Source of the DNA: Trichoplax adhaerens
Lineage: Eukaryota > Animalia > Placozoa
Direction: 5' to 3'
Length of the DNA stretch: 64,000 bases
Assembly (NCBI RefSeq): GCF_000150275.1
Contig: NW_002060977.1
Span: 253,235-317,234, forward strand
A program made the translations under genes and the position numbers. The first letter of the stretch is position 1, and every line of letters starts with the position of its first letter. Positions 25,956 to 61,310 of the stretch are shown piece after piece. The notes under the pieces were generated by a model. The model had not been told where the DNA came from. It ran no database searches and saw only the letters and a program-made list of their open reading frames with translations.

Positions 25956-26016
25956 ATGCGCTCGATTTGCTTTGTAACTGGCGTCTTGACTTTCGCAATT
26001 ACAATTAGAATAGCAG
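25956..26016 (+). CDS. Candidate signal-peptide first exon of LGR paralog 2
   Basis: ATG...MRSICFVTGVLTFAITIRIA then CAG|GTAAAT, a phase-1 donor compatible with the phase-1 exon at 28751. Alternatives exist. Confidence 0.4.
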
Positions 26017-27477: not shown

Positions 27478-28081
27478 TGTCGCAAAACAGCTTTACAACA
27501 AGATAACTTAATATACGATCAATAAACCAATTCCTTGAGCCACGTATCAAGGAACGATATCTACACTATCACAAACACTTTTGCTCTACTAGCAGACTAC
27601 ACAAAGACTTAAACGCCTCGTATTTTACGTTAAACACTAAGTTTAAAAATCCACTTCATTACACGATATACTGCATTTACATACTCTTACTCAATAGTTC
27701 ATGAATCATAGTTAGTACGATTAACTTTGGAATCATGTACTGAATTAGATATTAATTTTAGCAACTGCTCCCTTAATGCTAACAACAGTATTTACGAACA
27801 TAGACATCTGATGACTAATACAGAATAGTCAGATTACGATATGTTCTATTACGGAACATTTCCACGATAATTTGCAATCTACCATAAGTAAGTTACAATC
27901 ACAATGATTCGAACTGTAAGTAGATGATTTGCATTCCCTATTATAACTATTAATTTCAGTATGTCAGAGCTACATTAAAACACAGTATATCCAAATTAGA
28001 AGTTAACTAAATAAGGATAGGCTAACAGAATCATCTTAACATAGATATTTCTAATCTAATACAGTATATAACACTATCATA
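27478..28081 (-). mobile_element. Family B solo-LTR-like element
   Basis: High similarity to 35914-36542 with a short deletion near 27962; TSD not clear. Confidence 0.88.
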
Positions 28082-28750: not shown

Positions 28751-31700
28751 CGACTCTGGAAAATGTACCAAAAAGAATCAGTTGCAGCCCATACTATAGT
28801 TGGAGGATCTGTAATGGATATTCTGCTAACAGTAGCGGAAACCTTCAAATATCATCGCTACCATATCGCTACATGTAAGAACGCTAAAATCTGTGATGAT
28901 AGCTAATCTATAAAATGAATAGTGCAGTTAATGATACTATAAGTCTTTGAATCGCTATATAATCATATATGTTCATTAGATGCGACTGAAAATCGATCTC
29001 AAGCTTTAACTATTTGAACGTTACGTTATGAACTATTCAATTGTAAATTCACTCAATATTATTTATTAATCCTTTACTTTGGATTCTGTTAAATGATACT
29101 CACAAGTTCTCCTTACTCTATCTGATAACGGTAGGCTGATAAATATGACCAAATTTAAATTAACAAGTGAGCTTAATATGCTGTTGTAGTACCCTCATCG
29201 CTGCTACGTTAGCTTCGTAGTTTAATGGTCTTACGTACACACTTTGTATAAGAGCGAATGCTGTACCTCACCATTTCATCATCATCCACGGCCCACCAAC
29301 GTACTTTAATCTATGCAAACTATTACAGCTGTATTATGGGCAACCGTTGTATCATTAAGCGTATCACAAGGTACAACCTTTTATCTATGACTGTAAAATT
29401 ATTTTTAAATCGTGAATCGATGGCTTATCTGACTTCTTCCTATAGGTTTGATTGCAGCGAAATAAAGTTGCATTAGCTACAGAGATTATAATTTTTTACT
29501 TAGCTACTATTGTACTAATTTAACATACATAACTGTAATAAGGCAGGAATTTTCGCGACTTTCAATAAAGGCTAAGAGCTTATTTTCTCGAGCCTGTGCT
29601 ACTATAAATTGTAAAATCAGCCAGCTGATATTTAACTCTTAATATAATTAAGAATAAGCGCAATGAAGTTTTCAATCTCTCTAGAAAATCACAATACTGA
29701 CGTACGTTATTGTTGGTGAGACCGTATCTAATACATGTATTTTTTCACGGTCAAGCTTTGACCGTGACAACACGAAATTTATTTTTATGACTATAATATT
29801 CATCATATACTAAAAAATATGTATCATGCTCAGTGAACAAGTACGCGAAGAATTATGAGCAGAATGTATGGATGGGATTCAATAAAGAATACAGATGAAA
29901 TAGATTCAGCTGCAACTTAGTAATTTATAAGCATTGCAATTAATTTCGCTTTATTATCTTTCATCAAGAAACTAAATTTTAATTAGTAAAATCTTATTAT
30001 GTAATGGATTTATTTTGATTCAGTCATAAAGTTATTATCAATTCTGCGTAGGAGCTGACATTTCGATTATAACTGATGTTGTCAATAAGTAGCAATTTTA
30101 ACTTTAATCTGATGTCGTCTATTAAAATGATTTCTTTGAAAGTGATGATTTTGAATATAACTGATCAATATTTTGAATTTAGAGTGTTTGAAGACGTAAC
30201 GGCAAAAACATTAGAAAAAGTAACTAATTGTAAAGAAAATATTCGAATGTAAGCTTACATGGTAGCGCGCATCAACATTACTAATCTTTAATTAATTTCG
30301 TAACTTGAACTATATATTACAACTGATCTAAACTCAAGCCCGTATCAAGTGTGATATGGTATTAATACGTCCGTTATAAGAATCTTAAATATTAAAGCAT
30401 GAATATCGTATCTTTAAATATTTTAGGATGTTTCGCTTTGCTAGATTTGACATTATAAAGCCAAATGTGGTCGCAGATTGTTCCCAATTGCAGCTAATGT
30501 AAGATACAAAATTTAAAATCTCAGAACAGAAATAAGCTTGATATCGGCAAGGTCGATAATAAATGCGAGCTGTTAGTTCCAACAGAATATTAGCGATTAC
30601 GTCACCAATTACATATGCTGATAATGCAAAATACTTAACTTTCACTTTAAATTAGTATTTACGATGGGCTGAAAGTGGCCCTAAATTTATATATCTATTT
30701 TTACTTATCACGAATCAGTATACAACTCTTAGGGTGCCGTAAGTGTAGATGGCTTAGCAGCTAATGTTAAGATATGATTTTATTAGGAAACATTTAGACT
30801 AATTGCAGTAGGTTAAATTGATTAGCTTTCTTAAAATTGTCGTGTAAAGTATACATTCTGCTTTATTCATATTGGATATCTCAACTGAAATACTCGTATA
30901 AGATTATTTTATGTTATTTTGCTTTAATGCAACCAATTTACTCTTTCTTTCTTTTTTAATGATATTTTTTGCCCTAATTCCCAAACTTGGTTTTCGGACC
31001 ATAAGAATTTTTTGCATTAATTCTGCAAATATTGCAGCATTACGATTAACATGACGCTAGTGGTGCCTATCTGAATTTAGTTTTCATTTGCAGACGACTA
31101 GCTGACGTGGTGATTGAGTCTGGATTGGATTACTATTTGGCTAATGCTACAAGCGTAACCTATGTGTAAGAAAGTAATAAAATTAGTGAAGATATCGCAG
31201 GCATCAGTGACTCTCCTAGTATGCCGGTGTTAATTTAGCCCATTCAATAAGACTAAGTCCAAAGTTATGACTGACGATCAATGTAAATACGTAACAACTA
31301 AGCTTACTACGGCTCAAGAGGTATTCCGATTGGTGTACGGTATCGTGTATTTAATCATATACTAGTACACTACCCTTATCTCAATGCAAAGTCCGAGATG
31401 GTATGAACTGACGTTTATTTCTTAAGGTTTAGTGAATTAGCATTTTTCGAATCACTTAAAAATCCCTTTTAGATGTTATTAAGTTATCAGGAAAAAAATC
31501 ATTTAAGGAAATTCTATTGGGTTTTAAATTGTAGTCATTTTACATTAATCATGCAGGACATCAAACCAGCCTGAAAGGCATCATTTAGTGTTGTATAGTA
31601 CTAATTTTTGCTACATATATGTTTATTACAAGTGTGGTGTCATAGTATTAAGAGAAAAATAGAGAGCAGAGCCGTGAGGTAGCTATACTGACAGAATTTA

Positions 31701-34700
31701 TACTGCATATTAATTTTGCTTATATTAGCTTGCAGCTAGTACTCGCTTTAAATCTACGTAAACTTCAAACGGATTACGCAAATTCAACTTTCATTATCTT
31801 CTATTAGGATGACGTAATTTCTTCTATACGCCGGTAATAAAAACTAGAATCAATCTAGAGTAAAGTCAACAGGCAATCTGCTTTAAAGGAACTACGTTTT
31901 CTTTGGTGATTCTTAGCTAACTGTTGTAGTCAGTGTAACACGAAGAACTCAGGGTAATCACCAAAAAGAGTTTTATTCATTATTTGCGTGGTGTTAAATA
32001 CATTTTTAATATTATGATAACTTCACCCATATACTGAGTCATAATTTTAGTAAGTTTTCTAATAATGGATGGCAACGCATCCAAAATGTATCATTGTCAC
32101 AAGTCCCCATTTGCGATTTGGTTCTGTCAAGTGCTATGGTAATTATGTAAGGCTTCCACAGACTTGGAAGCCTTCTTCTAAGGGAAAACTAACTCTTTCC
32201 ACACAGTCACACAACTACTCAGGTTTCTTTCAAACCACTAGTACTTTTTATTCGGCCATCCAATTTCTAGTCTCTACAAGATTGTCCTAGCCCGGAGCAA
32301 CTACTAATGGCAAATGGTAATTCGCTCGGTCTTTTATACCGTCCCCACTCATTCGTGGGGCATACTAGTAAATTGCTCCTTCAACAAATTGTATTTGTTA
32401 CTATAGAGAGTTACTCCCAGACAATTAACATAACTAAGTATGGGCTCCGGTAGTAAACAACACTAATGAAAAGCAACCAATTATCGAGCTAATCAACGAG
32501 CCTGAGCTCAGCACCAATATGAGTAATTAATTGTTGGAGCAGAGTGCTCCTATAAGCTAGTCCTATATTAAACAATATTATATCTAGCTAAATATAATTA
32601 AATCTTTGTTATAAATATAAGTAGAGCTCAATTTACTACAATCTTTACTGTAGATTTCCTATTTAGTCAAATATGAACTAATGTTTCTAAAAATTAACCC
32701 TTGATTCGCTTTCACGCTACTTTACTACCGTGACAGTTCAAAATAATTATCATTGAAATTGATTAACTAAATCATTATAATTATTGCTTAGGGAGTTAAT
32801 TCACTAATATTCAGACTAACTAGGTGCCTGTGATAATATTGCTGTATCACTTACGTGTAAGGAATAACAAAATTCACATTTATTATTCTGCTACAGAGAA
32901 ATTACTCGTAGCAAATTAGCAACAACAAATATAGCAAAGGGTATCAGCAATCTTCCTGCTATATTAAACTTGTAAGTAAACATATAAAACTATTCGCGTA
33001 TTCTCTACCTTCTATGTAAATTTTAGTAATCCTTTCGAGCTGAAAATGAAATCATATTTTAGTTTCAAATTTGATTTTACCCGAAATGCATAGGCGAATA
33101 ACATACAACGATTTTGGTCACGACAAACCTGACGTTAAGCTATTATTTGATCGACGAATTACCTCGCTATTGTATATGTAAGTCACTAGAGTTGATTGCA
33201 TGTAACCAATGATAAATTTTATATTGTTCCTAAAATTTATTTAATCGATTGAATAAAGCTCGTAATAATACTGTAGTCACACGGAATCATAGACTAAATC
33301 GATCTTAATTTATATCGACAAATTATCGACTGTATAAAAGGGATATATCAGGTAATAGATTATCAAGTTTGAGTGAGAGAGCGTTCATAAATTGTGGCTG
33401 GTTGCGTAAACTGTAAGTAATATAACTAGAAACGTTGATAAACTGCATAATCGGCTTCCTCTATATTTTTATTTTGAGGAGTATAATAGCATTCACTTAA
33501 TTTTCGCTCAACAATTGAATGATTTTGATAAAATTTAACGATTTCGACAAATGTATCTTCAAAATAAGATAAGAACTAGTATTTCTTTACAAAATTTCAC
33601 TTCATTATACAAATTGGTTCATCTAACAATACCAAGGACGATCTATTTTCAGTCTACTACTATCTAATTTATTAAAGCAAAATCTACTATTTATAAACAA
33701 TTTGTTAAACGATTGCTCTCAGCAATACAACCATATCGTACCAATTAAGTCAAGATATTAAGCTAAATTTAATATTGTACGATTTATTTTGAGTCTTGCT
33801 TGTAATAAATGCGTTAAAATGCACTCTTCATAATAATGATATCTTATGTAGCACAATTTGTTAATATCTAAAAGCCATGATTTACTCATGGCCCCTAAAA
33901 ATGCTACCAGACGAACTTGTAATATCATCTAACATTAGGTACTAGTAAAATCGTACGGTCAAACGTTGAATTTCAGATATTACTGTTCAATCTTATCATT
34001 TTTTTCTGATAATAATTTAGCTCTGTACTACAATGATATATATCAATTTTTGTGTTATTACAATCTTACTATTACGATCGATATTATCATAATTCTGTTA
34101 ATTAATTGACTATAGAGTTGCAAATAATAATCAGATCTACAGATTTTCTTCTCAAACATTTCTTGGTTTATCGATGCTCGAATTACTGTAAGTGAAAATA
34201 ATGTAAGCAGATGACATTAAATTAAATACCATGCTAACACTTACTATCCTCCTTCCACTCAGAAATATCACTGGCAACCGAATTGCAAACATTGATGCCG
34301 ACGCTTTCCATCCTTTACAAAAGTTGAAGATATTGTAAGTTGTCCAAGTTTAGCTTATTATGCATCAAATTATGATTTAAATCATTACTTTAGAAGAAGT
34401 TAGACAACATAAAATTACATTCAAAGAATTTTGTATATAATTACAATGTTGTATCAAAAATTTTAAATTAGAGAATGAAACAATTATAGTATTTCGCCAC
34501 ATTTGGCTAAGGATCATATTTTTTTACTATATGTCACGGTACGAACTACCGTGAAGAAATAGCTATCTAAATTTGGTTAATATAATATAGTGATATTATA
34601 TTACAACTAGTTACTTACAATAGGAATTACTCTAATTATAAATGTGTTACAGTAAATTTAATGCTGTGCTGTAATGTGCACTGAAATGATTCTGTGAATG

Positions 34701-37700
34701 GACATATTGTTGTCCGACTGTGAAAAATTAGTTAGTAGATGTTCTCACCTAAGTAATTTTATAAGATAACTCGTGAATGTTAGCTGCTGTAGAAGGGTAT
34801 ATAAGCTCGTCAGATAGTTGAATAAAGTAGTTCACAATTTGTCTAGTTGAGTTTAACGTAGAATCAAAGGCGTCTAAATTGTTGTGAGGTGGTTAAGGGA
34901 TACTGAATTCCGGAGACTATAGTAATTTAGAGATTTGTTTTACGTTGTCCTTGTCACGAAGCTGATTTGTGACACTATAATCGTCATAAATGAGTATAAA
35001 TCTGATCTTACATCCAAACTGGACCTGCTTTTTCATTAAAATATCATTAGTGACTGTCGTATAATCTAATTTTACTTTAAATAAGATATATGAGCGACAT
35101 AAATTAGATTATAGAGCAGGTTGAATACTGAGCTCCTATTATCACTCGTAAATGTCGGATTACTTTGGATATACTTGATCAAAAGTCGAAAGTTTATGCT
35201 TCTTACCTAGATCAGTATCATGTTGTTAAGATTATGCTCTGGCATTTGATATATTCTTCAATATTCATTATAGAATTTAATCAAATTCACTCCTCGTTAG
35301 AATAACACACTAATGACATATGTATACTCCATGGGTTTAAGTCCGATAAAAATACTGATAACCCTCTTAGTACAGAGTATTCCAAATGCAGATTTATTTA
35401 CATCTAAGATAAGTAATAGTCGTCGTAAATTAAACTCACATATCTTACCAGCTTGAAGTTATGGCATGGCTAGCGGTTTCTCCGTTCTAAAGTTATGTTA
35501 TAATAGCGCATTTAGTTATATGTTTCAGCACTACTTATTAAGTTAGCAATAAATCTTTATCCAATACTGCATTTTAGACTTACGATCTTCTTTTTTGTAA
35601 GATTTTCTTGTAGCAAGATTAAAAAAGTTCACCAGAGCTTGAATACTGAACTTAATTATTATAAATATTAGTACCGCAATATGTACGGTATAAAGTTACT
35701 GAACCTCTGACAGGTCTACGACAAATGGTAATACTATCTATTAAATGAGCACATTATCGTAAACCGTCTGCGAAGTGACGGGAGTTTACACTAGTTTATT
35801 ACGAAAAGAACAGGATAAAGCGTATTATGTTTACAGTGCTATCCAAGCCCTAATCTCAAAATAAACATGTGTCTGCATTTTAGTTATCATACAAGCTTAT
35901 AGACGTTACGAATTGTCACAAAACAGCTTTGCAACAAGATAACGTAATATACTATCAATAAGCCAATTCCTTGAGCCACGTATCAAGGAACGATATCTAC
36001 ACTATCACAAACACTTTTACTCTACTAGCAGACTACACAAAGACTTAAACGCCTCGTATTTTACGTTAAACACTAAGTTTAAAAATCCACTTCATTACAC
36101 GATATACTGCAGTTTTATACTATTCCTCAATAGTTCAAGAGTCATAGTTAGTACGATTAACTTTGGAATCATTCACTGAATTAGATATTAATTATAACTA
36201 CTGCTCCCTTAATGCAGATAACAGTATTTACAAACATAGACATCTGATGCCTAATACAGAATAGTCAGATTACGATATGTCCTATTACGGAACATTTCCA
36301 TGATAATTTACAATCTACCTTAAGTAAGTTACGATCATAATGTTTCGAACTGTAAGTAGATAATTGCATTCCCTATTATAACTATTAATTTCAGTATGTG
36401 TATATGTGTTACTGTCATAAAAAGTCAGAGCTACATTAAAATACAGTATATCCAAATTAGAAGTTAACTAAATAAGAATAGGCTAACAGAATTATCCTAA
36501 CATAGATATTTCTACTCTAATACAGTATATATCACTGTCACACGAATCATAACGATGATTCTAACATAGTAAATCAATTACGAAATTTCTGCTTCATACC
36601 AATTAGATAATATAATTTTACGAAATATTGCTTAATTAACATAGCAATAGTTATATGTAAGAAGTTTTTTTGAATAATTTAACTTTATTCTTGATCTAGA
36701 AATTTAGAGAGTAATTTGTTAATATCAATCTCAACGGAAACTATAATGGAACTCTCCTCTTTAAATTACCTGTAAGACTGCTTCAAATAAGGCAATGTAT
36801 ATTCCTTATTATTACTTAATTTAAATTAATTACGAACGCAATTGGTACGAGAAGAACAATTAATTCTTTTTATTTTTGTTCAAGAATTCTTGGATCTAAT
36901 CGGATCTTTAATTACAGTTATGGTGCCCTAAGGCCTCTTCATAAATTACAGATCTTGTAAATAAAATATAAACGTTTAAATAATCATAAATAAGTCAAAA
37001 TTTAGTGATTACTTGATGAATTCTGTAATTGAACTTAATTATGCTTAAAAATAACGGCTAAAGGAAATAATTAGTACGATCTACTTTTCTTGGCTGCAAT
37101 GATACAGTCGTATTTTTGTATTACAATCTAGGAAATTGCCTTACAATCAGTTGACAGTTATCGGAAATGAATTTTTAAAGAGTGCCAGTTCTCTAACTGA
37201 AATGTAAGCATATGCTAATTAATATACAGGATTATAATTATAGTAGCGGCTTACAAGTGAAGATACTAGATTAATTATAAATTTTATTTTCTTCAGAATT
37301 AGAAGTTTACCCGCATATAACGTAACTTAGTATTAAATTACGAATTATAATTCATATTTATTATGATATATCGTAGCATATCTTTCTATATTTATTATAA
37401 TCCTTACTCATTTAGTAGCTCATAGCTATGTACTGTAATTGAACGTCACAAGTTAGAATACAGATGACCGAGTAGAGCTGGGCATCAGGTCACTATTAAT
37501 GCTTACGGTAAAACAGATATGTAACCCATGATTAGCATATGGTTAGTTTATCGTGTTGTGCCTGGTAGAAACATTATGCTTACATACCGTAAATACTGCT
37601 GGTGCTACCGTATTGGATTATAGATCGCCCGATGTGAAATATTGTTACTAATAACAATCTGAATGATAGTAAAATAAGCTAGAATGTTGCTATGCTGATT

Positions 37701-40700
37701 TTAGCTACATATATTATAAAATTTATATAAGCAGGCAAACTTCAGATTATTCAGCAGTTCTATCCAGAAGTCTTTCTAGTAGCTACATTCGGTTAGAGTA
37801 GAACTGCACAGGTTATCTTCGTATTAAAATGTTATAAAGTTCTAATTTTGTACGGGTTTTGAGATTTTATGATCTGTTATATCACACTGGAGCTTACAAA
37901 AGCCCAATAGATAAAGTAGCCTTTTAATGCCTTTAATTACAGAGACTTAGAAAATAATAATATCGAGAAAATTATGCCCATTGAACTTAATAATTTAACG
38001 AATGCTAGAATAATGTATGTATGAATAGTAATACTACTTGCTTTTCTTTCACAAATATTTGTCTGTCAATATTAATTTCGATCGTAGCTGATAAATTTAA
38101 TGCGTCTAGATCTTTGGCGAACAACAAGATTAAAATATTGCGGGAAATAACTTTCTTTAACCTCTCTAATTTAGAGAAAATGTAAGTAGAATTAACAAAT
38201 ATTTCATAAGACTATTTTAGAGGTGCTTCATAAGCAATTATGGTAATATTCAGATTATACCATAGAATTAATTCTAGATTATTATTTATATGTAATATTA
38301 TATATAATATATTATCTTACATAGTAACTTAGAAAACAACAGAATCGGTCAAATTGAAGACAATGCATTTTCTAATCTATCAAATCTATTAACACTGTAA
38401 GTGTTATTACAACAGCTGCCAATTTTCATTTAACCAAACTAAATTATATTTCTGAAAGGCTTTTTTATACGAGATCATAAATCGTTTGTGTGTGTTCGAA
38501 ACAGTGTTAAGATATAGCTTATGCCAATCTAATATAGCTAAGTGAACATTTAACCTAATATATTTTATTTAATAGATTTGAGTTAACATAAAAGTACGCC
38601 ACGCTGGTAGATAATATGTTAGTAAATAGACTCATAAAATCAAGACTTAAGTTATTAGAATGAAAATAGCTACTGTAGTACTTGTATTGACATAAAGCGA
38701 CAGCAATTTTTAAATATAAAAGCCTTTATCTTCTTTATGGACAGGAACTAGACACATTAAGCACTTACAATAACTTTCAATGCTATTTTTCATTTCATTT
38801 CGGTGTGGGATAATATAATTTCGTGTTTTCTCGTATTGATATTTTCTAATTTAAATTTTCCGCAGGAAACTCAGTTTGAATAAAATTAAAAGCTTGGGAC
38901 AACCCTTTTCGGCTGTATCTAATTTAAAACAATTGTATGTTAACATCAATTTTGTTAGTTCTTTTTTAATTTTGGCCTTTTATTTCAGAAATATAATATA
39001 CTTTAGATTCAAAAATAAATCTTACTTAATTTCTTTTATAGATATTTAGATTTAAATTTCCTTAGCAATCCTACAGATGGAAGCATGTATACGTTTCAAA
39101 ATCTTACCAAACTAGAAATACTGTAAGGCTAAATTTTCTTATTGTCCAAAATACCGTCTTATTGTTCGGAAATAATAAGGAAATATAATATTTTCCGTTC
39201 TATTTAAAATCTGTTGATGGTTTCATGACTTTACTTGTGGCAGTCTTTCTACTGCCTAATTCGTAACTTCTGCATAAAAACATTAGAAAGCTCTTATTTC
39301 AATATTTTCAGAGATTTATCAGGAAATCGCCTCACTAAAATTGATAAAAAACTATTCTATGGATTAAATAGTCTAAAATATTTGTAAGTCTTTGTTACAG
39401 AACAGCTTTACAACAAGATAGTTTAATATGCGATATATAAGTTTAGTCTCTGATCCACATGTTAGTGGAAAATATCTAGGCTTTAAAATGCTTAATGAGT
39501 TAGAGTATAAATTTGATAGTGTGAATAAACTATGCTCCTTTAAATAAAATTCAGCAGACAAATTATTTAAAATACGGGTGTATTGAAGCTGTTAGATAGG
39601 CTATTGTTGTTAAAATATTAAGTAGAATTAAATCAAATATACTTAAAAGATAATACAAAAATTTAGGGCTGTTGACAATAATAGGTATATAACAGTGATG
39701 TTTTTGATAATTCAAATATGCTGATTTCAGCTTCGTAGAATATAATATTAATCATAGAATTTTATTTTCAGACTAAGTTCTGTAAAAGTTAATTGATGTT
39801 GGTCGTAATCGTTATGCTATAAACAATTTAGCTAGCGTAATTAAGCAGCTACACTTTTCTCTTATTATTGTTCTTAGTCCTTCATTTCTAAGATTTGCTA
39901 TTGTAAGAAGCTTTCCTGGTCCGTTAGAACTTGTTGATTATGTAGTACCTCAATCGGCAGAGAATTAGTAATAATACCTGTTGTTATAAAATTACTAGTG
40001 TGATGTACACGCTAATTATAGTTGGTAGAACAAATTTTGTTGTAATAGGTAGATGCTACGCTAAAATAACCGTAATTAATTATTATGAAGCTATGTAGTT
40101 GCTGAGGTAGTTAAAATAGTTTAAGCATAACGAAAGAAAGTCATAGTTATGTTATATTATATTATATTATATTAAGAAAATTATAAAAGTAAGAAATGTG
40201 AAATATTTTCTTTCTTTGTTATATAACGTTAAATTTACTTTACACTTTATTTAATACTTCATTCCACACTAATACTAGATACTTGGCCAACAATCATATA
40301 TCTTACATTGAATTCGGAACATTTCAAAATCTGGAGAAATTAGTTCATTTGTAAGTCCTTTAAAAAGACGAAATTCCATTTAAGAGGAATGTAAGCTAGG
40401 TTATTATTACGCCTCTTGAAAGCAGCTCTTTATCTTTAGGAGTACCGAACAAAACCAATTGGTTACTATTAATGGCAATCAATTCCGAGGCTTAAGAAAT
40501 GTTCATCAATTGTTAGTAGCTGGAGTAACTTTATTAATACTACATTTTATGTAGCTATGATTGTATCGTAAAGTTCTTATAATGCGAAAAATATTTAAAT
40601 GTCAAAGTATTAATATTATCCAATCATATATTACAGTTACTCGATATGATTAAAGTATGGAAATAGATAATAAAATTATTGTTTGCAAGCTGAAAAATCT

Positions 40701-46700: not shown

Positions 46701-49700
46701 TCAGCTAGAATAGAGCTGTGTGTAGTTAATCTTTGTATAAGATTCAATAAAGCCCTTATTTTTCTAAAATTTGGAATTTCGTGATTGGTATATATCGCAG
46801 TCACGAACATTACTTTCGTGACAGTCTGTAAGATAAAGGTCAGTGAATGACAATATTACTGCAAAATAAGCGACAGAAGAATATGTAAGTAGCCAGCATT
46901 GCGATAAGATAACACCGAGATCAAAAATCTACAAATTCACAATAATTTGTACACTTATGGCTTTACGTTAAGTAAAAATAAAGAACTGATGTTGTTTAGC
47001 CTGTCACGGTACGAGCTACCGTGAAGAATTAAATAACTAAATTTGGTGAAATTTAATATTTATGTACCGTCGTTATAATTAAATACTTACAGCATAAATC
47101 ACTAAAGTTATATTATGCCAGAGTAAATTATATGTTGCGCTATAGCAATATCTCTTATATCGTCTCCGACATCAGTACAAGCTGTTGTGGTTGTAATTTT
47201 GACTTACAACAGGTCTTAGTTGTACTAAATGATTCTATGAATGGAAATACAGCAGTCTAATCATCCAGAATTAGTTCAAATCGATTAGATATCCAAGACA
47301 AGAAATACTTCTGTATTAATTTGGCTATTACGTTTAATGTTAGCTACTGCTGAAGGGTATAACAGCTCAGTAGGTACATATTTCAAATTAATAGCAAGCT
47401 ATAAAGTAGATATTGGATCGAAAAAAGAAAAGAATAATTACTTCACATTGTTTATTTGCATCAGCACAGCGGTCATAATTGCAAGCAGCTGCAACTTAGT
47501 TGCTATCAAACTTTAGGCTTTTTACTGATCTAATTTGCTTATATGAATCCTCTATCAACTGCAGCAATAACCACTCGATCAGTAATTCTACGGTTTAGAC
47601 GTATCATTGCTATCGTTCAGTACATTTGGCGTATTGTATGAGAACTAATTCATCCGTGGATGCGGTAAATTCTTAAGGTACTCCGACTAATGTACTAATT
47701 GGACTTCTTCTACACAAATAATCAATACCTGACCGATATCTGTTAGTCTTAGGTTACTCATTATTTGAGACCAAGTAATGATTCAAAATGACGTTAAATA
47801 TTGTTTGATCTTGCGGTCTAACTGAGACAATATAGATCACAACAGATCTCACTACTGAACGTAACTAAATCAAACGGCGCACACGATTGGGCTTAGATTT
47901 CTCAAACAATTACAATTACTTGTAATTAAAGATAGCTGGCAACTACTACCTCCAACCCTGATGAGTTGACTGACTAGAGTCGAATTAGTAGAATCACTAA
48001 AACCAAAACCAACAGCTGTAATGTCGTATAAATCTTTAAATATTATGAGTAAAGACGTACAGTACTACTACGCGTTAGTGCGGTAAAACTAATTATCACA
48101 AAGCGATCCGAACTGTATTCGGTCAAAATTGTAATAAACATGAATAGCTATTACTACAGCTTAACTGAAGAATTATTTTTTTGGTTATTACGTAGGCCAA
48201 TTTGCTATCAGTTTTATTGATATTTTTGCTCGTTAAATCTGATGGTTGACTTTATAATTACTCTTCCTGGTTTTAATAGTAATTTCACGCACTGACTCTA
48301 CGTAATCATTGCATGTACTTACTTAAGGAAATTTATTATTCTTCAACTAGGTATATAAATAATAATGGAATTAAAAATCTTGATTTTTTGAAATTTGTAC
48401 CAAGCCTGGAAAAATTGTAAGTTTGCAATAAGATCTTAGATATAACTTTATTCTACACAAGCTCAGAATGATAAGATTAAATGTCTAGATAATACAAGTC
48501 AAAGAACCGTACTTTTGATTCATAATCTCACATTGATTGTAACGTTATGAAAATAATATTACCTATATGCACTGTAGTATATTACTAATTATTTGCTATA
48601 ATTAACAAAGCAATTTATTACTAACAGTAAATCGAAAATAATAGAGGTCGAGATTACTAGACAAGAACGCCTTCTTTTTACGTTTCTAAAATTAGGTTAG
48701 CAAGATCGAACAAAATTAATACGCTTAGTCACAAAATTTTTAATCCGCTAAAGAATTTGAAGACTTTGTAAGTCTAAAATCAATCCTAATTTCAGACAAA
48801 TTTTACTTTTGTTCTTAAAATTCAGTAGAGTAAGCGCTTAGATGTGCCAATGAATTATGTAAAAGTAAATGGTAATAGGATAGATAAGATATTTTAGACT
48901 AAATACACCAATAAATTGAGTTAAACTCCGTTCGTAGAATGATTGTTCTACCAATTATAGATGCTTATATTTCAATAACTAAATAATGAGCCTCTACTCT
49001 ATTATTTGATAGTATTTTGATATTAACTTATTCGTGCTAGTTAATTTCTTAACACCTATAGTTCAGAAATAGATTAAAAAGTTTAATTTAATTATTTTAC
49101 TCGTATAGCTATATTTATTTGCCAATCTCTAACAATTTCTACGATAATTTAAGCTAAAATCAAGCTATTTAAATTTATCATAGGGATGTCTCTTCAAATC
49201 CTATCCATCATTTAAGTTACGAAGCCTTTTCTAAACTATCAAATTTATACAATCTGTAAGGTTTTCATGTCTTAATTGAATATACCGTATGTTAGTTTTC
49301 CTAATTATTATCATCCGGATCTACGTAGTCCATCATTCTCATACAAATTTAATTGAACTAACTTTTATGTTTATTTTAGTTATTTAGAAAATATTAGACT
49401 ACGAAGATTAGATCAAATCAATTTAACTAACTCAAGCAACTTACAGTCACTGTAGGTCGTATTTTCGTAGTAGTTATGATATTTGTTCATTATGATTAAT
49501 TAATTAATGAATATTCGGTTACCTTGAAGATCTATAGCATCTACGAATTTGTACATGTGGTAAAATACAAATATATTAATTATTACGCCGTTAACTTTTT
49601 ATTCGGTAAGGATATTAAGAAACAACGAAATAACTGATCTGCAGCGTAGAAATTTTGAAGGTTTACGGGAATTAAGACTGCTGTAAGTCCGCATAAATTC

Positions 49701-52700
49701 GTAAAAACGCTAATACCTGAGGTATTAATTTATGTGCTCGGCACTGATGAAATTAGCTAAAATAAGCAAGAGATAAATATCTAACTTTTCAGTACGGTAT
49801 TAAAGAGTACTAAAAAATGGCACCATAATCATAGTTTATAAATACCCGCTTGAAATACTCTAATAAAATCTAATTAGGGATTTATCGAAAAATGGAATAT
49901 CATACATACCTAATGACACCTTCGTACCTCTTAAGAACTTAACCACGCTGTAAGCATTAAGCTGCTATAAAGTACTAACATTAATTAGGGAATATAAAAT
50001 AATTTCACATTTATCATAATTATTATTAATAACTACAGCAAGGTGCTAAGATAGAAACTTCATGAACTTGTAATTTTATTATTTATAAACAATTTGGGAG
50101 CTTAAAGTAATTTATATCTGCGTAGGCTGTTCGACGATAACCGTTTAACAGAATTTGATGCCAGTATCATCTGTGAAAATACTAACATAAAAGAATTGTA
50201 AGCAAATCATTATGTTTAGGCTTATAGGTTCTACGAATATTATCGCTTGCTAAACCATTTTCCACCAGCAATAATATAGTAACTACTAGCATTAATGTGC
50301 TTCAATGCAGAAAACTTTTGGGTTATTAGTTTAACTGTTATTGAAAGATGCTTATGGTAGATTGAATGTGAACGATATTAAATTCTATATTGATCGAGCA
50401 CTGACAACTCTTTTAAAATGAATATTAATTCAATCACTAAAAATAATTGTTAAGAGCAAGAAACAATCCTAACTTGCAACAAAGATTGAGAGTGTTTTGA
50501 ATCTTTATGACTATAAATTAGAATACCAATCAGTCGATATTTCATTTAGATATAATTAAAATTTAGCTCAGAGACCTTAGATCTATGATGTCATACATTC
50601 ATTTATAGATAAATACTAAGTTTTACAATGTTCTGTTAGTACTATTAACAAATGTTTACGTAAATCAACTATGAATCAACTGATTTTTTGATAACGCTCA
50701 GGTTCAGTTTTACCTTAACAATTGCTAGTGGTTACTATTCCTCCTGACTATAGGAAATCGTTAGCATTTAGATTCATATTGTGGGTAGATATTAGTGAGA
50801 AAAACCTTACACTAGGCTCGTAGTGGTAGTTTTCTGTGATAATAAAACTTTTCGCCATTACAAATTTTTAACAACCACATATCTTTATTATTCAAATGCA
50901 TATTGAATTCATGATAAAACGCTATATGGTAATCATTATCGCGTATTTTAATAATTTTTTAAGCGGAAAGCAAAATAAAGCTTTCTAATTTTCATGTCAG
51001 ATATGTTTGTTTAACATCAATTTTTTGTCTAAATTGTAACACATCTGACTCATTAATACATTTTATATTTTAGAAGTTTTCAATCAAATCAGATTCATAC
51101 TATGGTAGATAAAAGTTGCATTGGCGGATATAAAAGATTAAATATTATGTTAGTACTACCAATCAACCTATAAATGCAATAAATCAATCAATTAATTTAT
51201 TTTATTTGGGCAATTATTTCAGCTATAAACTTGAAAATTAATCAAGTTTGTATCTTATACGCCTAGCAATGATGGCAGTCATAGCTCATTTGCATACTGC
51301 AAGATTTTTGTTAGATTACTAACTGATCTAAAACAATTTCTAAATTCTTGTAAATAGAAATTTCAACAATAATTCACTGGATGATCGATTCAGTAGAGCA
51401 CTAAATGCCATTAAAAGTGAAGTTTTGATAAATTTATATGACCTGTAAGATATCTCTCATACTCAGGCCTACTATTACGTTACCCATTTTAAGCAACATA
51501 CACTCGAAGAATTATTGTGTATTTGCACTAGAAATATCGGTCGAAACAAGATTGCTCATTTCCCGGAAGTACTTCTTCGCGCTACTAAATCAAATTTACG
51601 TTTCATGTAAGCTTAAAGTGTAATCAGTAGTTAAAGAAATACAAGAAAGTGTGGCAACTTGAAATCTAAATAATATTTGATTTGAGATTAACTTTGGAAG
51701 TTTATTATTTGTTTCGTTTAACGTTATTTTTAGAAATATTGGCTTTAATAAGATTGGCAGAATAGATGTTACGAAAATTATTAGTGGCTTTCAATATTTT
51801 AACTATATTGAGTGTAAGACTAATAAAAGGCGTATCTGTCGCTATTACTCCCTGTAAGTATTAGTAACTTCACAATAATTGCATTTGCTAAATTGTAATA
51901 GCGGTCTAATATACCTTTCTAGATACTTTCTGAAACATAAATCATTAAAAATAACTTACAGTACAGTAGTCATCACTAACAGAGTAGTTAGGGTCAGAAT
52001 GAGTATATAAGAACTAAGTACATTTAACTACTACATTTCAGCAACATTGCAGGAAGTAATTTAAGTTATCTAGAGTCAGGAACTTTTGCTCATATTCAAG
52101 ATAGTATGGGAGCATTGTAAGTTTAATTTCCATCTGAGGTTCAATCCTGTATTTATAAGCTAATAAAGCGATACTTTGTAACGTCTACTAGGACATTGTA
52201 TCTTAAATATGCGTATGTAATGTAACTTAGTATTGTGATTGTAGACTGTTAGCCATGTGTAGTATAATGTACGGTAGATATTTATCCTAAGAGATATTTG
52301 GTAGCTGTAACTATAGACTGTAGTGGTAGAGACGCTATGCTAGAGTACAGATGACTATATACAGTAAGCTGTTGAGTTACTAATATGGCTATAGGTAAGA
52401 ATAGAACTGTAAATCATATATTAGGATATGGTTAATTCATTGTACTTTGGCTGGTGTGAATAATGTCTACGTAAGTACTGTAGTCGTATCCATATTGGAT
52501 TAATGATGGTCCGCAGTAGAATAGTCTTACTAAGAATAATTTAACTATGTGTAAAATAAGGTAAAAGGTTGCCATGCGGATTGTAGCTGCGAATGCTACG
52601 GAAAGTATAAAAGCATGCAACTTTAGATTATTCTGTTAGTTCGTTGTAGAAGTCTTTAGAAGTAGTATTCGGCTAGAGTAGAGCTGTGTAGTTAATCTAT

Positions 52701-55700
52701 GTATAAGATTCAATAAAGCCCTTATTTTTCTAAAATTTGGAATTTCGTGATTGGTATATATCACAGCGTATAAATATATATCAGCAGATTCTTAAAGAGA
52801 GCTACAATGACTAATGTTTTAAAATTTTTAAAATTGAATTAATGAAATATAGGAATCTGAATGATAATAAGCTAAAAAGGCTAGATATCTCGGATTTAGT
52901 GAATATTACGAACGATATATTAAAGCATCTGTTAGTATGGATTCGAAGTTTATGTCATTACCGATACAGTAGTAACGTCGGTGAGAATAGATAAATCGGA
53001 GAATTTCTAATACTAAATTTTGATTTTAGGCACTTAGCAAATAATTATCTAACAACAATAACTACCAAGAATAATATACAATTGAAAGCTCTATCACATC
53101 TGTAAGAATTTTATTAATGTCTTTTAATGTCTGTGTAGATGTTCTAATTTTAAAAGTATACAAACTTGTATCCATTTTAATTGTATCAGAACCATTTTAA
53201 TAACGATATTTTGCTTAAAATTTCGGTAAATTTCACATTCAAAATCCCTAGAAACTTAATAAATAACAAGATAATAGATATTTGCTGGGGCAGCTCGTTG
53301 TCTACTGGTGCACCAAACGTTCAGAATTTGTAAGCTTGATTATGTACCGGTATTTAATAGCATACTTATGGCAAATATCAGACTCGTATACCATAAGAGA
53401 AATTTAAGCAGTTGATTGCAATTTATACAACTACATGAAAGAATAGTATTACCGTTTTATAAACGAATTTATAGAATACTACTAGTTGCTGAGTTCATTA
53501 AAGTCATTAAAATTTCGTTGCTAGAGGTAAAAAAAACTCGTTAGACTTAATGAAATAAATAACTGATGCTCTATTAAACTATAGGCAAGTGGACAACAAT
53601 GGTATAAAAATATTGCGATCGAACTGCTTTTTTGGCTATACTAAATTGTACAGTGTGTAAGTATCTAATTTTACCTCATGCATCCGAAACAGTGCAATTT
53701 ATTGATTATACTATATCACGAATGTAAAGAATTCTACTATACAATCAATATCATTATAATTTACGAAAGAAACCTAGTATCTTAGCAACAGATATTATTT
53801 GCAGATAATCATATTTGCTTCGATGATTGAAACGGCTTGTCACAACTTAAACTCTAAAGCAAGGAAACATGCTGTAAAACTCTATAAGTAAATACTGACT
53901 TAAATACTCTTTCACTAAACTTAAAATATACACAGCAAATACAATAAAGATAGAACATTTTATAACTATAAGACATATATACAACTTTTCATAGCACAAT
54001 TCAACTCAAAATATTCCCATTTATATCGGAACCGCGTAACTTGTAAACAACAACAGTGTTATTATTATGCCTTACCAGAAAAACATCTCGAATTGAGAAG
54101 TTTCTTATGTAGTTTCTCCATCAGTAAATATTTTTAATCTACTATTCATACTTAATTTTAATCTGAGCATGTATGCTGTCCAAATTCAACTATCATTAGC
54201 TAGAACTTTAATCATCTTACTTCTATCTACACAAAATAGCAATCAATATCAAATTTGTAATAAACTATCATAAATATTATTCACTGTAACTTAACTAAAG
54301 CATTATTTATCTTATCTAGTGTAGTGTTCACATCTAAATACGGTATAGTCTATTTTTAGTAAAAGTATTAGTTTTCACTAGACTGCAGCATAATTCTAAG
54401 ACTATAACATAATACTAAATATCTATGATCTATATTTAACAATTTACTCCGTGGAAATATCTTGTACTCTAGCTAACTTATACCTTAGCTTTAGCTTAAC
54501 ACAACAGTAACCTATTTTCATGAATCATTCGCGCCTATAAATAATTTCTTTTTGCTGTACTCCAGACATTATAAAAGCTATCTTCTTTCGTCTATTTCGT
54601 TAGTTAGTTAGTTCTGGTAGTTGCACGGTAAGCTTGCACACTTTACCTATTCTTCACTACTATAGTTGTTCAACTAGTAACGTCGTTACTTGCACGATAA
54701 TCTTATACGATTATTCTCTTACACTAGCTCAATAAAGGTTACTCTCCCGTTAACTATTCTGTTGTACTTTACTGCGACTAATGTCGAACTCTCAACCTTC
54801 CGAAACATCACATCTAACACTACAAATATATGTATTTTTTAATATTTGCGAATATTATACTATTAAGCTATCCTAACAATAATTTAACACTGTAATACAG
54901 TTTTTAAATCTTATTCCTTCTAGATCGTTAATTAAGAATCCCTTAGTTCAAGTCAGTACAGCTTCGTTCCTTATTACACCGAAATTGAAACAAGTGTAAG
55001 TATATAAGTAGCGTCTTAAGATTAATAATGCATACTTCTTGTACAAAAATAAGGTATGCCCGTAAATTGAGACAACTGAAATTTTGCATCGTTACATTTC
55101 ATGCGAAATGCTAACAGTAATCCTGAAAAATATTTATGAGCTGCTTTAAGGTCCTATTACTGAATAGCTAAGTTAATCATTTTTATATAGTTTATTCAAA
55201 TCCATGTTATTCCTGTTTCTAATACAGATAGACAGGGTCCCTATCCTAATACTAAATTATAGTTTGTAATATTGAAAAACTTTATCATTGATTCTGAATT
55301 CTATCTTTCGTAATAAATTCAAAATTGTAATGTAACTTATTATTAGCTATGTAGACTGTGAGCTATGTTTAGTATAATCTACTATAGTGCGACTCTTGCT
55401 ATATACAATTTAATATATAATTAATAGCTTATTGCTATAGACTGTAGCGGAAGATGCTTTGCTAGAGTGTAGATCTTTATATACAATAGGGTGTCGAGTT
55501 ACTATTAAGGTTAGAGGTAAAATAGAATTATAACTCAAATATTAGGATACGGTTAGTTCATCGTGCTGACTGGTAAAAACAATGCCTATGTAAATGCTGT
55601 AGTAATTTTCATATTGGATTAGTGATGGTCTACTGCAAAATTTAGTTAGTTATACTAATCATAACGTGTGTAAAATATAATAAAACGTTGCTGTAATGAA

Positions 55701-57105
55701 TATAGATGCAAATACTACTTAAAGTATATAAGCTGGCAACCAGAGTTATTCTAGAAGTTTTTTCTACTAGCTTTTACTAGTTGTATTCAGCTAGATTAGA
55801 ACTGCACAGACATTATATTTGTATAAGATCTAATAAAGTTCTAATTTTCTACAATTTTTGGATATTTTCGATCGGTTGTATCATAATAAATTACTCACAT
55901 CAACAAGTAAAATAATCAGAATAATTAATTATAGAAGTCGATACTTAATTCTATTAATTTATTTTCATAGATTTTCTACAAGAGAATATTTATGCTGTAT
56001 TGTACCTCCTACAGTTTCATACTGTACCCCTTACATTGAACAAGATGCTTTTACGACTTGTTCAGATATCTTATCCCATCAATCTCTTCAGTTGTTTGTG
56101 TGGGTAGTTGGATCATTAGCATTAGTTGGCAACGCAATAGTTATCTATTTTCAAATGTTTAAAGTCAAGAAGAGTTCTGAACCTGTTCCAGCGATGCTTA
56201 TTACCAATCTAGCATTTTCTGATCTAATGATGGCCGGCTATATTTTAATTATTGGCAGCGTAGATTTATTTTACCGCAATTATTACGCCGTTAACGCTGA
56301 AATCTGGTTACGCAGTTTCACATGTATCCTTGCTTGTTTTCTGTGCTGTACAGCAAGTTTAATGTCAGTATTTATGATGATTACAATCAGCATTGATAGA
56401 TATATTTACATCGCATTCCCATATTCAAACAAGAATCTTTCGCCAAGCCTAACCAAATGGATCATTACTATACTCTGGATATTTAGCATCGTATTTGTCA
56501 GTATACCAGTTGGTTATAGTATTAATGCAAATGGCGATATGAGACTATACGAATATACGAGTATCTGCATGGCAAGCAACTATAACAATTACTATTATCG
56601 TATATGGCTCATTTCCTACGTGGTAATCACGTTAATTTGCTGGTTAATCACCTGCTTTCTTTATGTGCACATGTTTATCGCAATTTATAAAACCTCTAAA
56701 GCTGTTTCAGCAGTTTCTCATAATAATAGTAAACGAATTGCAATTAGATTATTCGCTATTGTTATCACTGATTTAATATCGTGGTTACCATATTACGTTT
56801 ATATGGCTCAGATTATGGTTAAGCCAACCATTGCTGGCAGTGTTGTCTTGCAATTTGCGATTGTATTAGCATTGCCTATTAATTCTGCAATTAATCCATA
56901 TTTATACACCGTCAGCAGCCCAACATTTATAAGATCGGCTAAACATCGCATCATAAAATGGGGTTGTGTAACAAGAATAGTTCCAAATAATACTAAAGAA
57001 ATAGAAATTGGAATTAATAAAGACGAAAATATTGGATTGCGAACATTTAGCAGCAAGTCTAACGACAATATTACAGCTTCCACTAAAGATTGTTTAAGCA
57101 AGTAG
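28751..57105 (+). CDS. LRR-containing GPCR (LGR, RXFP/GRL101 type-C-like), paralog 2; about 42 LRR exons + 7TM, about 1,480 aa
   Basis: Exons by eye: 28751-28874, 30183-30248, 31094-31165, 32897-32971, 33094-33177, 33341-33412, 34116-34187, 34263-34334, 36700-36771, 36885-36956, 37132-37203, 37943-38014, 38110-38181, 38325-38396, 38866-38934, 39042-39122, 39312-39383, 40279-40350, 40440-40511, 40730-40801, 41205-41276, 41384-41455, 41589-41654, 42753-42824, 42950-43030, 45254-45325, 48351-48416, 48696-48767, 49184-49255, 49380-49451, 49611-49682, 49878-49949, 50126-50197, 51074-51148, 51358-51444, 51532-51606, 51734-51853, 52042-52116, 52853-52930, 53030-53101, 53252-53329, 53585-53656, 54924-54995, 55971-57105. 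All are open in frame (e.g. NITGNRIANIDADAFHPLQKLKIL, DLSGNRLTKIDKKLFYGLNSLKYL). The first 3-5 exons are less certain. Confidence 0.9.
32095..32735 (-). mobile_element. Probable solo-LTR-like element (D-related)
   Basis: TGTCAC...GTGACA termini and a minus-strand TATAAAAGACCGAGCG similar to the element at 1518-2447; no clear TSD. Confidence 0.55.
34532..34974 (+). mobile_element. Family C solo-LTR-like element
   Basis: TGTCAC...GTGACA, TSD CTATA/CTATA; TATATAAG then AATAAA. Confidence 0.9.
35914..36542 (-). mobile_element. Family B solo-LTR-like element
   Basis: TGTCACA...TGTCACA, TSD CGAAT/CGAAT. Confidence 0.92.
37316..37886 (+). mobile_element. Old family A element
   Basis: Diverged match (GTAACTTAGTATT...TATATCACA). 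Confidence 0.7.
41684..42630 (+). mobile_element. Old family A element with an insertion of about 390 bp (about 41918-42304)
   Basis: TGTAACGTAACTTA...TATATCACA; homology to family A breaks and resumes around the insert. Confidence 0.72.
44523..45072 (-). mobile_element. Family A solo-LTR-like element (young)
   Basis: TGTGATATA...CATTACA; 4-bp duplication TGCC/TGCC; nearly identical to 52216-52765. Confidence 0.92.
45652..46823. mobile_element. Family H element with nested family A
   Basis: TGTTACG...CGTGACA, flanks ATCTG/GTCTG; a related 5' end occurs at about 50448. Confidence 0.75.
46249..46799 (+). mobile_element. Family A solo-LTR-like element nested in H
   Basis: TSD GTCAC/GTCAC; TATAAAAG near 46638, AATAAA near 46746. 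Confidence 0.9.
47002..47375 (+). mobile_element. Family C-related element, 5' part; right end undefined
   Basis: Starts TGTCACGGTACGAGCTACCGTGAAGA like family C; homology continues to GAAGGGTATAACAGCTC, then is lost. Confidence 0.65.
50448..50860. mobile_element. Diverged family H-related element
   Basis: TGTTAAGAGC...CCTAACTTGCAACAAAGATTGAGAG matches the start of 45652; right end uncertain. Confidence 0.45.
52216..52765 (+). mobile_element. Family A solo-LTR-like element (young)
   Basis: TGTAATG...TATCACA, TSD GCGTA/GCGTA; TATAAAAG near 52606 and AATAAA near 52712. Confidence 0.93.
53838..54897 (-). mobile_element. Family E element with nested family F
   Basis: Homologous to 15598-16149; flanks CGGCT/CAGTT (degenerate). 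Confidence 0.8.
54320..54812 (+). mobile_element. Family F solo-LTR-like element nested in E
   Basis: TGTAGTG...CATCACA, flanks TCTAG/TCTAA, TATAAATA near 54536, AATAAA at 54731. Confidence 0.75.
55326..55885 (+). mobile_element. Old family A element
   Basis: TGTAATGTAACTTATT...GTATCATA; diverged. Confidence 0.75.
55971..57105 (+). CDS. Terminal exon of LGR paralog 2: hinge + 7TM + C-tail
   Basis: Acceptor CATAG at 55970. Reads FSTREYLCCIVPPTVSYCTPYIEQDAFTTCSDILSH, with IDRY, TDLISWLPY and LPINSAINPYLY. The ORF-track N-terminus (55858-55970) is intronic. Confidence 0.95.
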
Positions 57106-60760: not shown

Positions 60761-60906
60761 AACAAGTATGTAATTAATCGCAAAAAGTTTAAACGTAAAT
60801 CACGTACATTAAAATTTCTATACAAGATGTGTTATAAAACTAACAAAAATTATAAAATACGTCGCAGTTTGCTATACCTTATTACATGAACCATCCTTTA
60901 GGAGGC

Positions 60907-61310
60907 TGTGACAGTATTAGATACTGTATTAGAGTAGAAATATCTGTGTTAAGATAATTTGGTTAGCCTATCCTTATTTAGTTAACTTCTAATTTGAATA
61001 TACTGTGTTTTAATATAGCACTGGCTTTTTATGACGATGACATACATACATATACTGGAATTAGTAGTTATATTAACTATTACTCATAAAGTATTGAGGA
61101 GGAGTATATAAATGCAGTAAATCGTGTAATAAAATAAATTCTTAAACTTAGTGTTTAGCGTAAATAGCGAGGCGTCTAAGTCTTCGTGTAGTCTGCTAGT
61201 AGAGCAAAAGTGTTCCTGATAGTGCAGATATCGTTCCTTGATGCATAGTTCAAGGAATTAATTCATTGATCGTACGTTACGTTATCTTGTTGCAAAGCTT
61301 TTTTTTGCTA
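60907..61310 (+). mobile_element. Family B element, internally deleted
   Basis: Matches 14837-15465 minus about 220 bp; TSD GAGGC/GAGGC. Confidence 0.85.

Follow-up and report, generated by a model that had tools for sequence, protein, structure and literature searches.

A long leucine-rich-repeat receptor gene in Trichoplax adhaerens, probably the full-length form of TRIADDRAFT_62192

In a 64-kb stretch of Trichoplax adhaerens DNA (the window; all positions below are window positions), a reading frame for a seven-transmembrane (7TM) domain is preceded, on the plus strand, by a long series of small exons, most of which encode one leucine-rich repeat (LRR) each. Do these exons form a single gene, called gene B here, for one leucine-rich-repeat G protein-coupled receptor (LGR), and is such a receptor of a new kind? 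The locus is probably a single intact gene, the full-length form of the truncated TRIADDRAFT_62192 model, in a placozoan-specific LGR expansion. We favour one gene because of its structure and paralogy, rather than because of transcripts. The architecture is real but of a kind already in the literature; the novelty lies in the longer model for gene B and, apparently, in those for its paralogs.

Locus and public gene models

The window is AT-rich and eukaryotic (GC content about 0.30), and its only open reading frames of at least 90 residues are two 7TM reading frames, both on the plus strand. A comparison of the terminal exon of gene B with 1.8 billion representative proteins led to P0001 (XP_002118148.1, TRIADDRAFT_62192, Trichoplax adhaerens), with 98% identity. 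Exon by exon, this 726-residue protein matches the 3′ third of the locus with 100% identity. The locus is that of T. adhaerens H1, scaffold DS985275.1.

The JGI model from which P0001 derives has its start codon at 46847, inside a repeat-bearing intron, and omits the exons that begin at 48696, 49184, 49380 and 53252. The ortholog model of Trichoplax sp. H2 (P0153, 759 residues) is flagged as partial. It begins within exon 48351 and omits exons 53585 and 54924. When the two models are combined, they account for the complete set of exons from 48351 onward. The 10 kb that precede the JGI model contain no further annotated gene.

The H2 ortholog locus and the window are 99.46% identical over 14.7 kb. 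The exons further upstream are beyond the reach of the H2 contig because it ends at window position 44592, within a repeat. Exons of H1 and H2 differ at 6 of 2,467 nt (three synonymous and three conservative differences, no frameshift), and introns differ at 57 of 10,047 nt. This pattern is weakly consistent with constraint, the pair differing by 0.5%, which is too close for a firm selection test.

Terminal exon, hinge and 7TM domain

The terminal exon (55971–57105) is 100% identical to residues 350–726 of P0001. It opens with FSTREYLCC-x8-CTPY-x3-DAFTTCSDIL, a cysteine hinge (EYLCC..CTPY..DAFTTCSDIL) that is followed by a complete 7TM domain with DRY and NPxxY motifs, a C-terminal tail and a stop codon. 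Pfam 7tm_1 matches over its entire profile (1–260 of 260, E 7.8e-24). The top PDB matches are all LGRs (LHCGR, 8e-30; RXFP1, 1e-29; then FSHR and TSHR), and no LGR4-6 chain occurs among the 60 best PDB matches listed. About 40 residues separate the last LRR from the first transmembrane segment (TM1). The short hinge and LGR 7TM domain proposed in the initial annotation of this DNA are borne out by the 7tm_1 and LHCGR/RXFP1 matches.

The hinge follows a framework, CC-x8-C-x-P-x3-5-D-x-F-[ST][ST]-C-x-D-[IL][LM], that is common to GRL101-like receptors bearing LDLa modules in echinoderms, a hemichordate and molluscs. Bird RXFP1 resembles it less: where the framework has CC, it has one C, and the final Cys is missing. 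HMMER alignments to LHCGR and RXFP1 place the LGR hinge end, C-x-P...D-x-F-x-x-C-x-D-[IL][LM], directly before TM1, and the final hinge residues also align with LHCGR DAFNPCEDIMGY. Gene B joins an LGR-like 7TM domain to an LRR ectodomain, both features of an LGR. The repeats are recognised by LRR_8 matches in P0001 and P0153 (exons 48351–54995), by an exon-based hidden Markov model (HMM), and by LRR_8 matches of single exons further upstream.

Organization of the LRR exon array

Direct reading of the 53.0–56.1 kb region revealed the exon layout. Each exon consists of an AG acceptor, 1 nt, about 23 codons, 2 nt and a GT donor; it spans about 72 nt and encodes one LRR. Plain counts of the LxxLxLxxNxL motif and an any-phase exon scan did not tell the strands apart in this AT-rich DNA. 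A scan with fixed phase and fixed register returned 75 candidates with a score of at least 7 on the plus strand versus 8 on the minus strand, and an HMM built from the 72-nt exons gave hits of at least 8 bits 45 times on the plus strand versus 4 times on the minus strand.

The core model comprises 38 strong LRR exons (33341–54995), each of them flanked by AG and GT sites; the donor is gtaag in 33 of the 38. With an N-cap exon and six weak LRR exons, 45 exons precede the terminal exon, or 44 if the weak exon 30093–30248 is dropped. Exons were searched singly in databases and profiles, and were joined only locally, for checking the frame and counting repeats. All introns are in one phase, and the joined frame, which includes the terminal exon, contains no stop. 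The codon formed at each junction occupies the position of the conserved Leu that opens the following repeat, and specifies L, I, V or M in 44 of 45 cases. The 45th becomes L once the exon listed as number 39 (51734–51853) is extended to its gtaagt donor; its proper end is 51853 and its length 120 nt, as in both public models. The initial annotation had counted 42 consecutive in-frame LRR-like exons, a figure that lies within a few exons of ours.

The 26 regular exons yield the consensus xLxNNxIxxIxxxxFxxLxNLxx, with the Asn present in 24 of them, typical of a 24-residue LRR. Identity between exons of gene B does not exceed 60% at the nucleotide level, which indicates that the array is old rather than the product of a recent amplification. 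The 38 strong exons and the terminal exon encode 1,318 residues. Counted from 28751, the predicted protein would comprise about 1,544 residues, or about 1,565 with the putative signal peptide described below. The earlier estimate of about 1,480 residues is recovered (1,478) by leaving out exon 30093–30248 and taking exon 39 in its short form.

The strong exons are listed here in order along the plus strand, and are 72 nt long unless stated otherwise. Exons 1–9 were scored by the exon HMM: 33341–33412 (20.4 bits), 34116–34187 (22.8), 34263–34334 (21.0), 36700–36771 (20.3), 36885–36956 (18.1), 37132–37203 (14.5), 37943–38014 (21.8), 38110–38181 (23.7) and 38325–38396 (26.3). Four of these also match Pfam LRR_8 as single exons: exon 1 (E 0.074), exon 3 (E 0.01), exon 8 (E 0.007) and exon 9 (E 3e-4). 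Exons 10 (38866–38934, 69 nt) and 11 (39042–39122, 81 nt) come from the fixed-register scan and the joined frame, and exons 12 (39312–39383, 24.6 bits) and 13 (40279–40350, 23.5 bits) again from the HMM. The exons are too short for tblastn, which, with long paralogs as queries, found no match upstream of 34.5 kb.

From exon 14 onward, the array can be compared with that of gene A, a tandem paralog located upstream on the same strand (274–17766) and cut by the window start. Exon 14 (40440–40511) is the first with a collinear gene A partner (274–345). Both the HMM and this collinearity identify exons 14, 15 (40730–40801), 16 (41205–41276), 17 (41384–41455), 18 (41589–41654, 66 nt) and 19 (42753–42824); exon 20 (42950–43030, 81 nt) is identified by collinearity. 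Exon 21 (45254–45325) is alone between two repeat-inflated introns. It scores 24.5 bits, has a gene A partner at 4022–4093 (52% identity), and is unchanged in H2.

Exon 22 (48351–48416, 66 nt) is the first in the public models, and both P0001 and P0153 map to it at 100%. Exons 23 (48696–48767) and 24 (49184–49255), which the JGI model omits, are present in P0153, as is exon 25 (49380–49451, 19.2 bits). P0001, P0153 and the HMM agree on exons 26 (49611–49682), 27 (49878–49949) and 28 (50126–50197). Both models and gene A collinearity define the irregular exons 29 (51074–51148, 75 nt) and 30 (51358–51444, 87 nt), as well as exons 31 (51532–51606, 75 nt), 33 (52042–52116, 75 nt), 34 (52853–52930, 78 nt) and 35 (53030–53101), the last of which was also read directly. 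Exon 32 (51734–51853, 120 nt, donor gtaagt), likewise in both models, encodes a C-x8-C insertion loop (ECKTNKRRIC) that is kept in gene A (LCGETSSIGC, about 11560–11676). Exon 36 (53252–53329, 78 nt) is found in P0153 and omitted by P0001. In turn, exons 37 (53585–53656) and 38 (54924–54995), the latter encoding the final repeat before the hinge, are found in P0001 and omitted by P0153.

The 5′ end of gene B

Upstream of the strong array, the LRR consensus weakens. An irregular LRR exon of 84 nt (33094–33177) is weakly similar to an irregular LRR of the paralogs P0014 and P0016. The fixed-register scan, the joined frame and donor density point to four weak LRR-like exons: 30427–30498 (72 nt), 31094–31165 (72 nt), 32051–32146 (96 nt) and 32897–32971 (75 nt). 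The least certain exon, 30093–30248 (156 nt), is open, in the same phase and followed by a GTAAG donor. The exon at 28751–28874 (acceptor aacag, donor gtaaga) continues the joined frame and encodes a putative N-cap, a degenerate LRRNT (..ISCSPYYSWRIC..LQISSLP..).

In the 28.7–33.3 kb interval, GTAAG donors that follow a compatible open exon have a density of 1.72/kb, and in the strong array one of 1.37/kb. The same measure is 0.09/kb in the 17.8–28.7 kb interval, 0 in the 57.2–64 kb interval, and 0.06/kb on the minus strand. Measured against this background, the donor density shows that the weak 5′ exons are more than chance. Exon density is high back to 28.7 kb, beyond which it is at background level.

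Under strict criteria, scanning for signal peptides yielded no first exon. A relaxed, phase-aware scan found one good candidate, 25956–26016, located 2.7 kb before the cap exon. It encodes a putative signal peptide, MRSICFVTGVLTFAITIRIA, plus 1 nt, ends at a gtaaat donor, and is the most signal-peptide-like of the ATG exons in the 17.8–28.7 kb interval whose donor has the required phase; Pfam has no relevant match for it. A paralog locus of Trichoplax sp. H2 (L003) has the same arrangement. Its array starts with a signal-peptide exon (L003:385-448) encoding MKIRLLSSFQSLIIICIALFC plus 1 nt, and 2.3 kb further on lies a canonical LRRNT exon, CPSECVCETSVIKC; the phases are those of the window candidates. 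By analogy, 25956–26016 may be the signal-peptide exon of gene B, and the cap exon is the analogue, in position and phase, of the L003 LRRNT exon.

Relatives and receptor class

All named proteins with more than about 37% identity to the 7TM domain belong to T. adhaerens or Trichoplax sp. H2, and the H2 copies are named 'GRL101-like' by NCBI. In an unrooted FastTree of 81 7TM domains, a thinned set that holds neither type A nor type B sequences, Trichoplax proteins form a clade of their own in which gene A and gene B are sisters. This clade is separated, with SH-like support of 100, from LDLa-bearing GRL101-like receptors, bird RXFP1 and an environmental group.

Type A LGRs have 9–11 LRRs, type B LGRs about 17, and type C LGRs about 10, together with LDLa modules. 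Gene B has 38 strong and 6 weak LRR exons, so the earlier statement that its ectodomain is more than twice the canonical maximum holds against all three types. It also differs from type A in hinge length, with about 40 residues before TM1 in place of a long hinge, and from type B in the 7TM domain, since LGR4-6 are missing from the 60 best PDB matches listed. Its 7TM domain groups only with Trichoplax LGRs, and its many LRRs, family-type cysteine hinge and lack of LDLa are those of the placozoan-specific LGRs.

The exclusion from type C needs closer consideration. No LDLa-like Cys/DxSDE motif was detected in six frames, on both strands, of the 64-kb window, which agrees with the initial annotation, and a regular-expression search found no LDLa in proteins of the placozoan clade. 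An open reading frame with six Cys residues (17974–18144) was considered as an LDLa module and rejected, as it has no DxSDE motif. Nevertheless, gene B might be a derived type C receptor of the GRL101/relaxin type that lost LDLa and still serves an insulin/relaxin-like peptide. The hinge cysteine framework matches that of LDLa-bearing GRL101-like receptors, these receptors are also the best non-placozoan matches, and the NCBI name of the H2 copies points the same way. We consider this derivation unlikely, given that LDLa is required for activation in type C receptors (as established for RXFP1/2) and none is present in the window, that the LRRs number about 44 and not about 10, and that the 7TM domain scores equally against PDB structures of LHCGR (type A) and RXFP1 (type C). 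Moreover, the 7TM clade is separate, and a published tree places the family outside type C (PMC9545775). Of the relaxin-receptor/GRL101-type hinge and 7TM domain that had been proposed, the hinge assignment is supported as regards the GRL101-like cysteine framework, while the 7TM assignment is not supported: that domain ties between LHCGR and RXFP1 and falls in a separate Trichoplax clade.

Comparison with known receptors

An undescribed LGR architecture had also been suspected, provided that no LGRs of this clade with about 40 LRRs had been published. This suspicion is not sustained. T. adhaerens has 46 LGRs, of which 41 are Trichoplax-specific and fall outside types A, B and C (Hauser, Koch and Grimmelikhuijzen 2022, PMC9545775). 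They have a Cys-rich hinge of their own and 'an unusually high number' of LRRs, and Tadh-LGR-15 is drawn with 34 (PMC9545775). In substance, many-LRR receptors of this clade, with up to 34 LRRs, were therefore already described. Only a few placozoan LGRs had been found by Roch and Sherwood 2014 (PMC4079206). In Kamm et al. 2019 (PMC6321704), the discussion covers the immune receptors of placozoans and their lack of true TLRs, but not the LRR-GPCRs.

Gene B resembles the Trichoplax-specific LGRs in organism, high LRR number, short Cys-rich hinge, absence of LDLa and position outside types A, B and C. The genes of these receptors are often adjacent, since Tadh-LGR identifiers are CoGe TriadITZ numbers, many of which are consecutive (PMC9545775, Supplementary Table 2), and gene A and gene B are likewise a tandem pair. 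The differences are that gene B has about 44 LRRs (38 of them strong) versus the 34 drawn, and that an exon-level structure, an N-cap and a signal-peptide exon are not described in the text of PMC9545775.

In molluscs, echinoderms and hemichordates, GRL101-type (type C2) LGRs have a similar hinge, FCC-x7-10-C-x-P-x2-5-D-x-F-S-S-C-x-D-L-M, directly before TM1, and provide the best non-placozoan 7TM matches (about 30–34% identity, 140–170 bits). They differ in having LDLa modules, often with CUB or C-type lectin modules, and about 10 LRRs; gene B has none of these modules. RXFP1 (type C1) and the type A receptors LHCGR, FSHR and TSHR share the LGR-type 7TM domain (E about 1e-29) and an alignable hinge end. 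In vertebrate LGR genes, each LRR is encoded by one exon of about 72 nt and a large terminal exon follows, and RXFP1 and type A genes have this layout in common with gene B. They differ in having 9–11 LRRs, type A receptors in their long hinge, and RXFP1 in possessing LDLa and lacking both the CC and the last hinge Cys.

Toll-like receptors have 19–25 LRRs, and Drosophila chaoptin has about 41. Both feature long arrays of 24-residue LRRs with occasional irregular repeats, a likeness at the level of the repeat motif, and both are single-pass or GPI-anchored proteins rather than GPCRs.

One gene or several

Several points weigh against a single gene with the full set of exons. Both public models begin near 46.8–48.4 kb and omit different exons, so that the 28 exons upstream of 48351 are joined to the same mRNA by prediction. 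The common phase of the exons would allow any subset of them to be skipped in frame. At the 5′ end, the seven exons furthest upstream (cap and weak LRRs), searched singly, have no relevant match in Pfam, and blastp-short comparisons of the cap and weak exons with the fetched proteins returned nothing significant. The N-cap has two Cys residues versus four in the LRRNT of L003, and the putative signal-peptide exon, whose donor (gtaaat) is modest, is supported by analogy with a single paralog.

The shared phase raises the matter of cassette use. One gene might produce mRNAs that skip many LRR exons, in which case isoforms would provide variety and the 44-LRR protein would be made rarely or never. 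All 44 internal exons are phase-symmetric, and the two public predictions already omit different exons without a frameshift. In contrast, consensus splice sites are found at every exon, including those omitted in one model, and exons with a gene A partner are conserved (22–61% protein identity). As the public models are also at odds with each other, the omissions in them look like artefacts of prediction. We therefore give only a small chance to extensive skipping, and retain the reading in which all exons would be spliced into one mRNA.

Gene A allows the continuity of the locus to be assessed. It comprises 25 one-LRR exons (274–16347) and a terminal exon (16554–17766) that encodes 403 residues with the same EYLCC..CTPY..DAFTTC hinge; none of its matches among the fetched proteins is better than 67%. 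Its exons are collinear, one by one, with gene B exons 40440–54995, i.e., the last 25 LRR exons. In gene B, introns of 2–3 kb interrupt this series (43030–45254–48351), whereas the gene A exons that match the intron flanks are 1 kb and 0.15 kb apart. The large introns of gene B hold interspersed repeats, and are large because of repeat insertions.

These data bear on the idea that the locus is split, the 7TM gene starting near 46.8–48.4 kb with about 15–17 LRRs and the exons at 28.7–45.3 kb forming a separate LRR-only gene or being unused. The starts of the JGI and H2 models are in line with a split, as are the division of the exon blocks by 2–3 kb introns and the H2 annotation of paralog loci, which breaks upstream LRR exons into separate small genes. 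However, gene A has the same exons in a contiguous series with short introns, and repeat insertions explain the large introns of gene B. The JGI start codon is intronic and beside a repeat, and the H2 model is flagged as partial, on a contig that ends in a repeat at window position 44592. The DNA between the exon blocks yielded neither another signal peptide or cap nor a transmembrane segment or a terminal exon with a stop; a signal-peptide-like exon and an N-cap are found at the 5′ end only. A split locus is accordingly improbable, and a single gene extending to the 5′ exons is the better reading.

It is more improbable still that the cap and weak exons at 28.7–33.2 kb are degenerating and noncoding, with the protein starting at an unrecognised exon nearer 33 kb, for although the cap has only two Cys residues and the six weak exons, scattered over 4.5 kb, have a poor LRR consensus and no Pfam match, all are open, in the right phase and equipped with GTAAG donors and hydrophobic junction codons, exon density is about 20 times background, and N-terminal LRRs are often irregular.

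Divergence, paralogs and possible function

Gene A and gene B are 43% identical in the LRR exons and 63–67% identical in the hinge and 7TM domain, and gene B, which gene A adjoins, arose by tandem duplication. Divergence has been faster in the LRR part than in the 7TM part, in keeping with a diversification of ligands in this family. Within the ectodomain, conservation is highest in the membrane-proximal irregular repeats (50–61% identity between the two genes).

Three paralog loci of Trichoplax sp. H2 have arrays of similar length, with same-phase LRR exons numbering at least 42 in L003 (L003:385-20738), at least 44 in L004 (L004:809-14147) and at least 42 in L005 (L005:391-24647). Their public models (1,270, 1,209 and 1,062 residues) are 9–16 LRR exons short, or split. 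The upstream LRR exons are unannotated or called as small LRR genes of 96–191 residues. On these exon counts, about 42–46 LRRs looks like a family trait. A broader proposal is that this number is standard in a placozoan LGR subclade (four loci with at least 42 LRR exons), whose tandemly duplicated and rapidly diverging members, in an animal without true Toll-like receptors, would serve as environmental or microbial pattern receptors or chemosensory receptors rather than hormone receptors, with exon skipping adding variety. We regard this proposal, taken as a whole, as speculative and rather doubtful.

The predicted receptor would consist of a probable signal peptide, a degenerate LRR N-cap, about 44 LRRs, a four-Cys hinge and a rhodopsin-class 7TM domain with intact DRY and NPxxY motifs. 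From what is known of the family, the long LRR solenoid would capture a ligand from outside the cell, most probably a protein or a peptide. The signal would then be relayed through the hinge end DAFTTCSDIL, which aligns with FNPCEDIMGY of glycoprotein-hormone receptors, and the 7TM domain would activate a heterotrimeric G protein.

The public protein (726 residues in H1, 759 in the partial H2 model) covers less than half of the likely receptor. If transcripts confirm the longer model, the LRR number of the placozoan LGR expansion would be about 42–46, and not at most 34. The ectodomain would then be, to our knowledge, the longest LRR ectodomain on a GPCR. Domain counts, trees, cloning and deorphanising of these receptors would be affected, though the longer model does not establish a new receptor class.

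Repeats and further long-LRR loci

A pair of 552-nt inverted repeats, 100% complementary, is located in two introns of gene B (44522–45073 and 52215–52766). The H2 ortholog contig breaks inside this repeat. The pair reflects either a very recent insertion or an assembly effect. Further copies of the family are found at 46260–46796, 22972–23520, 19927–20235 and 11866–12244. Two more non-coding repeat families (84–95% identity) occur in introns and intergenic regions and account for the longest introns, with copies at 27477–27964, 35911–36561, 14832–15468, 7616–7915, 60888–61307 and 63815–64000, as well as at 5971–6279 and 34531–34839.

In the paralog locus L005, two LRR exons (L005:391-462 and L005:1893-1964), 1.5 kb apart, are identical and have identical flanks; they reflect a local duplication of very recent date or, alternatively, a duplicate created by the assembly. 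The environmental group in the 7TM tree consists of ENA metagenome contigs that encode single-exon LRR-GPCRs of 1,000–1,300 residues (P0127, P0117, P0090, P0098, P0139, P0138 and others). Their ectodomains of 700–900 residues contain roughly 30 or more LRRs and no LDLa, and the group nests in the LDLa-type GRL101-like clade. It may represent a second, independent case of a long-LRR GPCR.

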